Of a DNA stretch of 64,000 nucleotides, positions 31,901-34,900 are shown piece after piece. The stretch comes from Octopus bimaculoides. Taxonomy: Eukaryota. The notes under the pieces were generated by a model. The model did no database searches. It saw only the letters and a program-made list of their open reading frames with translations, and had not been told where the DNA came from. The DNA is taken from contig NC_069001.1 of the NCBI RefSeq assembly GCF_001194135.2, positions 3,035,004 to 3,099,003 of the forward strand, written 5' to 3'. Within the stretch, counting starts at the first letter, position 1. Every line of letters begins with the position of its first letter. Both the position numbers and the translations under genes were made by a program.

Positions 31901-34900
31901 CACAATTACCATTATTATTACCATTATTATTATTATTATTATTATTATTATTATTATTATTATTATTATTCAGCTTGTCTTATTTCTATTGCATGCTTTC
32001 ACTACACATGCTCAATGCCTCAAGTATATGTAGTGCTATGATTTGGTTTTGTTATTTTCACTATAATATATAGGTGTTGTGCCTAGCAGTGTTATTTTCA
32101 GTTAATCATGTTTTTAAATTCCGTGATTGTAGCTGTGTAGGTGTCTGCATTATCATTATTATTGTTGTTATTATTATTATTATTATCATAGCTACTACTA
32201 TTATAACTATTATTGTTGTTGTTGTTATTGTTAATATCATACTATGTTTTGGTTTTGCTTTAATTTATACAAATTGCACCCCAAGTGACATCAAGGAACA
32301 ACAGGGCTTTTGCCCTTGAAGGTGCTAACATGTGAGGTGCCACACAATTGAAAACATTGATTTTTGTGAGAGAAAAGACACACACACACACAGAGTGAAT
32401 AAGGCTGCATCAACACAGAGAGAAATTTATGAAGAACATGTGAAATACCGATAACTATGATCTTTTGTAATCTTCCTTTTTGGGGGCTGCCAGGGATTTG
32501 TGTCTACATACTTGTTGGCTCCTCTTGATATCATTCCAACTATTATTATTATTATTGTTATCATTATTATTATTGTTATTATTATTATTGATTTGACACC
32601 GGTTCAGTTTTATTCCTGGCAGGATTTATGTAAGTAGCAGGTTACTGGTATCCACAATCTTTCAATAGATTTTCAAGTGCTTAGGACCTTCTTGATAATC
32701 TTTCCGGTCCCTAAAAGGCAAACTTTCTGCAGAAGCTCTACAGAACATTCCATTCCAATCTCCTTCAACCATTTCTCTATATCTTTGCTTACAGTTCCCA
32801 ATGCACCAATTATTATAGCCACAGCCTTTACAATTTTCATTATTATTATTATTATCATTATTATTATTATTATTATTTTGCTAACCTTTCCTTTTCATTG
32901 TATACCATGTATACTTATTCCTTTTTTTTTTTGTTTATTTATTCATTTTATCATTTTATTATATGTAACCCCCAACATTTCATGTCTATTTTGTATTGTC
33001 CCCCTCATCTTTTGCCCTGGTGGCAAATAAATGAAATCATCACCANNNNNNNNNNGTTGTTAGTATTATTATTATTATTATTATTATTATTATTATTATT
33101 ATTATTGGTAGTAGTAGTAGTAGTAGTAGTAGTAGTAGTAGTAGTAGCAGTAGTAGTAGTAGTAAAGAAGATTATTATTATTATTATTATTATTATTATT
33201 TGTGTAAAGATTGCAAGTGCAACAACAGATGCAATGTGGAAAAAACCAAACCAAAAACAAAAAAAATTGTTATAAAACACACACGCAAAAATGTGTAGAA
33301 ATATGGAAAATATAACAGAAAAACCACACGCAGGAGGGTGTGTTCATGTGTTAGATCAGAAATGAAGGAACTACAATCTACTTTGTTCTTTTTTTTTTTT
33401 TTTTTTTTTCTTATAATTTTAAATTCACACAGTGAAATAGGTGAAGAAAATTTGGATAAAATCAGTGAAATTTAAGATTATTCACAAACTGGTGTTGAAG
33501 AAAAACGCAAAGAAAGGACGATAACAAAAGAAAACAAGAACGAAAACCAACAACAACCTCAGCAAAAAATCAAACCACAAAAATATTGGATGTTAAAAAT
33601 CAAAATGGTGGTACTTACATCTTCATACTGAAAAATAAACAGCAGCAGATGATAAGTAATCAGGTTAAGATATAAAAGAAGTTTATTTGATGGAGAAACA
33701 CAGAAATGTTCCATTAATCTCCGATTAATGTTACTGAATATGAAACTTATTGGTCGATACCTCTCAATTGCAGCAATTGTTTATATATATATACATACAT
33801 ACATATATATATATATATATATATATTTAAATGCAAAAATGTATGAAGATAAATATATATAAATACATTCATACTAATGTATAAATATATGAATGAATAA
33901 ATGCATTCATACATATAAATACATACATACATACAACACACACAAATCTGCATATGCAATGACTCTAAATATTGCCCACATGTGCACAAATATGCACACA
34001 TACCCTGTAGTTGATGTTGAAGTTCCAATGAAGGAGCCTTGGATCTAGGTTAGAAACCAGCNNNNNNNNNNNNNNNNNNNNNNNNNNNNNNNNNNNNNNN
34101 NNNNNNNNNNNNNNNNNNNNNNNNNNNNNNNNNNNNNNNNNNNNNNNNNNNNNNNNNNNNNNNNNNNNNNNNNNNNNNNNNNNNNNNNNNNNNNNNNNNN
34201 NNNNNNNNNNNNNNNNNNNNNNNNNNNNNNNNNNNNNNNNNNNNNNNNNNNNNNNNNNNNNNNNNNNNNATATATATATATATGTATACTTTATTTAAAA
34301 GCAGCAGAAATATAACAAAAAAACCGTTACTCTGAGTTTCACGTTCCCGTTCATGAACGGGAACGTGAAACTCAGAGTAACGTTTTTTTTGTTATATTTC
34401 TGCTGCTTTTAAATAAAGCATATTACTCTACCTCTGGTATTTGAGTACTCTTTTTTCCACCTTGTTGCACATTGCATGTGCTTACTCCGGTATATATATG
34501 TATATGTATATATATATATACATATATATACACATGTCTGTTTGCATATGTATCACAGCCAGCCAAGTGTTTGACATCTCTGATATTTCAAAAGGTGATT
34601 AAAACATTCACTAATGTTGTGAATAGCTGTCTGGCTGAATTAAACTCAAGTATATGCAATTTAGGCTGTACCAAATTAAAATAGCTATCTATAAATCATA
34701 TTTAATGTATACACACTGTTGATAGGCCAGTTATGGCAGTATTTGTCCGGAGATAACATCTCTTTTGGACTTGCTGTATTAAAAGCACAATATCAGCTAT
34801 TTATGTGAGTGTAAATACACAAATGCATAAATGTGTGTGGGTTTGTGTCTGTGTATGCAATTATATGTACACACACACATACATACATGCATACGTGTAC

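Follow-up and report, generated by a model that had tools for sequence, protein, structure and literature searches.

A candidate nine-nucleotide microexon in a class III myosin gene of Octopus bimaculoides, located in the region that codes for the actin-binding loop

The stretch analyzed here comprises 64,000 nucleotides (nt) of Octopus bimaculoides contig NC_069001.1 (assembly GCF_001194135.2, positions 3,035,004 to 3,099,003) and is referred to below as the window. A first-pass annotation had pointed to a 9-nt exon in it, encoding Tyr-Glu-Asp (YED) and preceded by a pair of UGC motifs. Unmistakable motifs of a myosin motor, and the last part of a protein kinase domain, were seen in the stop-to-stop frames of the minus strand. 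Exons in the window matched the end of the kinase domain, a complete motor and IQ motifs, as expected for the kinase, motor and IQ layout of class III myosins, and the orthologue P0241 carried the corresponding Pfam domains PF00069, PF00063 and PF00612 on one polypeptide. The top matches in homology searches were all named myosin-IIIa or myosin-IIIb. Judged by these similarities, the host gene of the YED unit is a class III myosin read from the minus strand; the YED unit lies on that same strand, which the first-pass annotation had left unstated.

An exon model of the gene was built from tblastn anchors in combination with splice-site scoring. Its 20 exons run from 54249 to 21683 on the minus strand with a frame that is open over 2358 nt, and three IQ-motif exons come after them; the gene extends, on the same strand, from past 54237 down to at least 1606. 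The 1674-residue assembled protein was used as the query to find relatives. It was 97% identical to a myosin-IIIb-like protein of Octopus sinensis, 91% identical to a protein of Argonauta hians and 81% identical to transcripts of Sepia pharaonis. The RefSeq protein of O. bimaculoides itself, XP_052831248.1, originates from a locus on CM046621.1 (GCA_001194135.2) that includes the window and shows the same runs of N, and it is identical to the built model in the region of loop 2. The open reading frame at 40738-40902 was tried as the missing loop-2 exon and was dropped for the 92-nt exon listed in Table 1.

The YED unit is located in a phase 0 intron of 17.6 kb, which splits the coding region of loop 2. 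The string attacttatcatctgctgctgtttatttttcag/TATGAAGAT/gtaagtac quoted in the first-pass annotation is present as the reverse complement of window positions ~33611-33660. Read as TAT GAA GAT, in phase 0 with respect to both flanks, the unit yields ...TSNSR-YED-MGHGQG... and adds a tyrosine, as had been proposed. It is 9 nt long, within the 3-27 nt class of microexons, is a multiple of three, contains no stop codon and is bounded by AG and GT, all properties of a cassette microexon. With a score of 4.5 the acceptor is inside the range of the constitutive exons of the gene (0.0 to 13.7), and the YED splice-site scores together, with boundaries cag/ and /gtaagt, fall within the constitutive range; the position weight matrices used were self-written generic metazoan ones, so that all scores are relative only. 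Two adjacent UGC motifs were found where they had been described, at -20 and -17, on the 5' side of a short U-rich tract. A scan for repeats around the exon returned only AT- and TTA-type low complexity, and neither strand of 23000-41200 matched an RNA family in Rfam.

The 17.6-kb intron contains 26 open 9-nt units between AG and GT, among which YED has the highest combined splice-site score. Three units on the sense strand of the loop-2 intron reached a combined score of at least 7.5; the antisense strand of the intron contained none, and the rest of the window, with both strands considered, had none either. In 200 dinucleotide shuffles, the mean number of such units per intron was 0.02. Its top rank in the intron, the empty control strands and this shuffle mean place the complete YED unit far outside what chance would give. 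The two top-ranked units, YED and a second one encoding Tyr-Lys-Ser (YKS), are precisely those that match annotated inserts in octopod proteins. The third high-scoring unit, TGTATGCAT (Cys-Met-His, CMH; 37448→37440, minus strand), has a very strong CU-rich tract but a weak GUGCAU donor, is embedded in low-complexity sequence rich in TGCA and matches no annotated insert; it was treated as a chance occurrence.

The RefSeq isoforms of O. sinensis diverge at the YED junction by three inserts of three residues each, which are used combinatorially. Isoform X1 carries FEN-YED-YKT, X2 FEN-YED, X3 FEN-YKT and X4 YED-YKT; X5 has FEN only, X6 (XP_036367897.1) has YED only and X8 has no insert. YED was seen in further isoforms as well. 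In Argonauta hians, GAB1606866.1 shows FEN-YED at the same junction. A transcript of Sepia pharaonis (Logan SRR3011300, assembled; from the whole animal according to PMC5541922) contains the FEN insert, encoded by TTTGAAAAT. Because octopod protein models carry the exact YED tripeptide at the same junction, which we regard as decisive, we take YED to be a real microexon, the second in a cluster that comprises three, and one that is unannotated in O. bimaculoides. The first-pass claim of a microexon is thus borne out, in the form of a frame-preserving 9-nt cassette that the O. sinensis isoforms and Argonauta hians have at this place; the arrangement of three in tandem had been missed.

The YKS unit, also unannotated in O. 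bimaculoides, has an acceptor made of a long U-tract and CAG and a GUAAGU donor. It evidently corresponds to YKT, which is inserted in isoforms X1, X3 and X4 of O. sinensis. Alignment of YED with YKS extended over the splice sites and the exon only (22 of 28 positions, z of about 2 against shuffles), and an origin of the two by tandem duplication was rejected, since no homology was found in the flanks. An AG/GT-flanked FEN exon (TTYGARAAY) was not found in the assembled intron. Three bare matches to TTTGAAAAT, at 40182, 40030 and 29307 in the intron, have no splice sites. The FEN exon may be concealed by one of the two assembly gaps listed in Table 1, both of which fall in the interval from the upstream exon to YED. 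The sequence at 34285-34422, which adjoins the gap closer to YED, is a near-perfect palindrome with 69-nt arms that are 97% complementary and have no spacer; it may be an assembly artefact.

Table 1. Location of the microexon units, their splice signals and related features. Octopus positions are those of the window; the last four rows refer to loci fetched from other molluscs. Arrows indicate the direction of transcription.
Feature	Position	Strand	Basis or remark
9-nt cassette microexon TATGAAGAT, Tyr-Glu-Asp (YED), phase 0	33627→33619	-	sequence; top 9-nt AG..GT unit in intron; octopod isoforms
YED acceptor cAG	33630→33628	-	sequence
U-rich tract UGUUUAUUUUU, followed by CAG as 3' splice site	33641→33631 (site 33628..33641)	-	sequence
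UGCUGC at -20..-15, candidate Srrm/eMIC-type intronic enhancer	33647→33642	-	sequence
Branch-point-like UCUUAAC, A at -38 (window 33665)	33664..33670	-	pattern scan, prediction only
AG-exclusion zone, 89 nt, 5' of acceptor	33630..33718	-	sequence
YED 5' splice site GAT/GUAAGU, intron part consensus	33618→33613	-	sequence
Second 9-nt microexon TACAAATCT, Tyr-Lys-Ser (YKS)	25197→25189	-	second-best unit in intron; preceded by uuuuuuuuccag and followed by guaagu
Preceding exon, ends ...HTPLTKI	41842→41713	-	ends in phase 1
Upstream constitutive exon (92 nt), coding for the first half of loop 2	41008→40917	-	ends in phase 0; identical to XP_052831248.1
Downstream constitutive exon, end of loop 2 and next helix	23258→23137	-	starts in phase 0
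Assembly gap, 208 N	34062..34269		435 nt 5' of YED in transcription direction
Second assembly gap	39677-39803		listing of N runs
Pecten 15-nt microexon	L002 43395-43409		separate exon, GUAAGU donor
Physella 15-nt microexon, IYSHL	L003 25566-25580		separate exon, GUAAGU donor
Mactra 15-nt microexon, IYSAL	L004 34317-34331		separate exon, GUAAGU donor
Mytilus 15-nt microexon	L005 57692-57706		separate exon, GUAAGU donor

Loop 2 of the myosin motor is a flexible, positively charged surface loop, which makes the first electrostatic contact with actin. Alignments to solved myosin motors in the PDB break at query residues 165-209, where they stop at ...ALFHT and resume past the insert stretch. With chicken skeletal myosin (2mys) the alignment extends as far as residue 624, which we take to be just before loop 2. 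Since the alignments break exactly across the insert stretch, we place the YED insert in loop 2, the variable loop that connects the upper with the lower 50-kDa subdomain. The loop adjoins, on its downstream side, the conserved ...QTV..F...L..LM..L....PHFVRC helix, and within the loop the octopus inserts enter ~7 residues upstream of a conserved STSMTR segment. By charge arithmetic, YED alone lowers the net charge of the loop from +5 to +3. Two of the three inserts are acidic and one is basic. Depending on the combination, the net charge lies between +2 and +6 and the loop gains between 0 and 9 residues. Splicing of a tyrosine microexon directly to the Met that opens the next exon (23256-23258) creates, as a pattern only, a YxxM motif (YEDM or YKSM), which could offer phosphotyrosine-dependent regulation.

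Other molluscs show an alternative IY(S/G/N)AL insert at the same junction; scallop and abalone have pairs of isoforms that differ by it, and it also emerges when oyster species are compared. As a separate 15-nt exon was located at this junction in all four fetched loci (Table 1), the loop-2 microexon slot of myosin III is old within Mollusca. The molluscan exon and the octopus ones share the intron position, after ...GGSR and before the G/S-rich ...SMTRIQQTV, as well as an aromatic residue and the GUAAGU donor. They differ in that the former is single, 15 nt long and neutral, whereas octopus has three exons of 9 nt, of which YED is acidic; unlike the shared slot, homology of the exons themselves is not demonstrable. 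In Mytilus an additional exon of 36 nt, YHGSSSSKYLYS, was observed in the same loop (L005 52764-52799).

The first-pass annotation had taken UGC next to the 3' splice site as the hallmark of those neural microexons that the eMIC domain of Srrm3/4 proteins (Srrm2/3/4 in invertebrates) activates. Exons that depend on eMIC are indeed enriched in UGC near the 3' splice site and have long AG-free zones (PMC8797185), and in human SRRM3/4-dependent microexons UGC is found between branch point and AG in 74-79%. The premise holds as far as this enrichment is concerned but not as a strict rule, UGC having been reported as neither sufficient nor strictly necessary for the response to SRRM4 (bioRxiv 10.1101/2024.09.17.613571). 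The UGCs of YED are situated between the branch-point-like UCUUAAC and the AG and are combined with an AG-free zone of 89 nt and a consensus donor, which agrees with the published eMIC architecture. When all AG sites on this strand were taken as background, 30% had at least one UGC at -33..-4, 5.4% had at least two and 0.9% had TGCTGC; for YAG sites and the range -40..-4, at least two UGCs were present in 9.9%. Several constitutive acceptors of the myosin III gene end in UGCAG. With two or more at 5-10% of AG sites, a UGC pair could well arise by chance and is weak evidence by itself.

The motif was then compared over six molluscan loop-2 microexons, each of 15 nt or less: YED, YKS and those of Pecten, Mytilus, Physella and Mactra. 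The Pecten exon has UGC at -35, -18, -15 and -10, with UGCUGCgUUGC just 5' of it and a UGCUGC strikingly like that of YED, and the Mytilus exon has UGC at -35 and -13. At least two UGCs within -40..-4 were found in three of the six, namely YED, Pecten and Mytilus; relative to the background of each locus (3-10%) this gives P = 0.0035 (Poisson-binomial), with a threshold set post hoc; with a threshold of at least one UGC, the same fraction gave P = 0.24. The recurrence of UGC at loop-2 microexons is therefore suggestive, not diagnostic. We regard an involvement of eMIC-containing Srrm234 in the inclusion of YED as plausible, though somewhat short of likely.

Taken together, it seems probable to us that YED is a cassette microexon in loop 2 of O. 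bimaculoides myosin III, the middle one of three, for which we propose a weakening of actin binding and eMIC-promoted inclusion. A number of observations weigh against this reading. XP_052831248.1, the RefSeq protein of the species, is without any of the three inserts. RefSeq XP models are computational, and some of the isoform combinations may be the product of enumeration and not of observation. The U-rich tract abuts the AG on the 3' side of the UGCs, and not on their 5' side as in the vertebrate canon, and a UCUC-rich tract is absent. Two UGCs 5' of an AG are, as shown above, not rare in this DNA. No UGC lies within 57 nt upstream of YKS or within 60 nt of the Physella and Mactra exons, and for the acceptors of Physella (IYSHL), Mactra (IYSAL) and YKS taken together none lies within 57 to 110 nt. 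Finally, the proposed effect of YED on actin affinity is taken from other myosins.

Several of these points are shared by the alternative that survives best, in which YED is real but independent of Srrm234 and its eMIC domain: the strong core signals of the exon (consensus GUAAGU donor, U-tract adjoining the AG, good branch point) would suffice, other factors or stochastic inclusion would be at work and UGCUGC would be incidental. Such inclusion would also account for the free combinatorial use of the three exons, the GUAAGU donor is common to all the exons considered, and the 5-10% of AG sites in the window with at least two UGCs, the exons of YKS, Physella and Mactra that lack the motif and the published behavior of SRRM4 targets are all in line with it. 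Against it stand the recurrence of TGCTGC at about -20..-15 in front of the loop-2 exons that octopus and scallop have at equivalent positions, the three of six exons with UGC pairs versus the 3-10% background, the long AG-free zone at YED and the fact that most retinal and neural microexons studied elsewhere need SRRM3/4. We consider eMIC-independent inclusion possible, if rather unlikely. A second alternative, that YED is splicing noise or an annotation artefact, a functionless chance AG-N9-GUAAGU used at trace level and expanded by annotation pipelines, would agree with the fact that only computational or pipeline annotations contain YED and that the O. bimaculoides RefSeq model omits it. 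However, the same tripeptide occurs at the same junction in three genomes from two octopod superfamilies, with AG/GT and frame intact in O. bimaculoides, the annotated inserts are matched by precisely the two best-ranked units of the 17.6-kb intron, and molluscs in general make alternative use of a microexon slot at this position; noise or artefact is very improbable. Scarcely credible is the view of YED as a stepping-stone for removing the 17.6-kb intron, a recursive or intron-subdividing exon that is normally spliced out again: it would be in keeping with the 17.6-kb length, with a 5' splice site of very high strength and with the presence of several such units along the intron, whereas the exon starts with UAUGAA and not with GU, so that joining to the upstream exon regenerates no 5' splice site and a recursive splice site was rejected, and the exon is kept in annotated coding sequences with frame and amino acids conserved.

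For YED as a regulated loop-2 microexon, the following mechanism can be proposed. When spliced in, the exon would place Tyr-Glu-Asp after ...TSNSR of the positively charged actin-binding loop, and octopods would use FEN, YED and YKT/YKS in all combinations. The acidic insert would be expected, from its charge and from other class III myosins, to weaken the binding of actin and the ATPase that actin activates. When autophosphorylation or PKA brings negative charge into the region of class III myosins that binds actin, affinity for actin, ATPase and tip localization are reduced (review PMC6981383), and the human MYO3A phosphomimics T908D and T919D were modelled as facing actin D24/D25 (PMC13453034). 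From the charge of the insert and from MYO3A we reasonably infer a lowered actin affinity with YED. The insert may accordingly act as a splice-encoded counterpart of the loop-2 or motor-domain phosphorylation that down-regulates class III myosins, and the three exons could represent a graded, transcript-encoded form of phospho-regulation. The least certain step is inclusion in photoreceptors or neurons, which would be promoted by an eMIC isoform of Srrm234 through UGCUGC at -20..-15, with the consensus GUAAGU helping. A more far-reaching version, with the three microexons as an eight-isoform dial on the actin-binding loop of a photoreceptor myosin that would cover net charges of +2 to +6 and loop lengths of 49 to 58 residues, would be set according to cell type by eMIC-Srrm234 through UGCUGC elements and would go back to an ancestral molluscan slot, the one filled by the 15-nt IYSAL exon in bivalves and gastropods, appears clearly unlikely as a whole.

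Known systems resemble this arrangement in part. Vertebrate MYO6 has a conserved 9-nt retina microexon encoding Glu-Asp-Glu in the motor domain, and 71% of retina microexons respond to SRRM3/4 (bioRxiv 10.1101/2021.09.08.459463). Like YED, the MYO6 microexon is 9 nt long and strongly acidic, and the protein concerned is an unconventional photoreceptor myosin whose motor domain receives the insert in a functional surface loop. It belongs, however, to a different myosin class and phylum, lies at insert-1 of the nucleotide pocket instead of the actin-binding loop 2 and is single, whereas the octopus exons are three in tandem and combinatorial. With SRRM3/SRRM4 (Srrm234 eMIC) microexons in general, YED shares the length of 9 nt, the preserved frame, the insertion into a surface loop of a sensory-cell protein, UGC between the predicted branch point and AG, the long AG-free zone and the strong 5' splice site. 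It differs from them by the U-rich tract between the UGCs and AG, by the absence of a UCUC-rich tract and by a sister exon, YKS, without nearby UGC. Phospho-regulation of MYO3A at T908/T919 and of Limulus myosin III in loop 2 likewise brings negative charge to the actin interface of class III myosins; it is reversible and post-translational, whereas the octopus microexon is fixed in the transcript. Non-muscle myosin II has alternatively spliced, neuron-enriched loop-2 inserts (NMHC II-B B2 and II-C C2) that alter actin-activated ATPase. These are single exons of 21-41 residues in class II, in contrast to the 3-residue microexons of the class III octopus gene. A literature search returned no paper on loop-2 splicing of cephalopod myosin III. 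YED as such is already contained in protein models that databases list for O. sinensis and Argonauta.

Further features were noted at the locus. The C-terminus of XP_052831248.1 (1319 residues) resembles an intron read-through at 16968-16879 on the minus strand. Tail exons that O. sinensis isoforms use are still present in the window on the same strand, with a large exon of ~470 codons or more at 10877-9465 and, at 2634-1606 (2539-2634 and 1606-1908), an alternative conserved C-terminal tail of the O. sinensis isoforms. As these tail exons remain in the window beyond its end, the annotated O. bimaculoides myosin III model looks truncated. (TCTA)n microsatellites lie directly 5' of three constitutive acceptors, at ~41030-41150, 22270-22300 and 18560-18600 on the minus strand; the exons behind them start at 41008, 22226 and 18531, and the repeats may provide their pyrimidine-rich tract. 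A 121-codon open frame at 58838-59200 on the plus strand is like a fragment of a mariner/Tc1-type transposase, and many copies of a short interspersed repeat, which yield open frames, are spread across the introns.

For O. bimaculoides, these results mean that the annotation of myosin III is incomplete, the loop-2 microexons having been left out. The interest of the locus comes mostly from the combinatorial arrangement of three exons in a functionally well-understood loop. Three 3-residue inserts in a loop that sets initial actin affinity, and that is phospho-regulated elsewhere, amount to a natural experiment in motor tuning, for which the read-outs are well established in class III myosins: actin affinity, ATPase and tip localization in actin bundles. 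The microexon that recurs at the same junction across molluscs provides a dated case of a slot that is kept while its content changes. If inclusion is cell-type specific, the octopus exons would be a lophotrochozoan case of the photoreceptor and neural microexon program known from vertebrates and flies.

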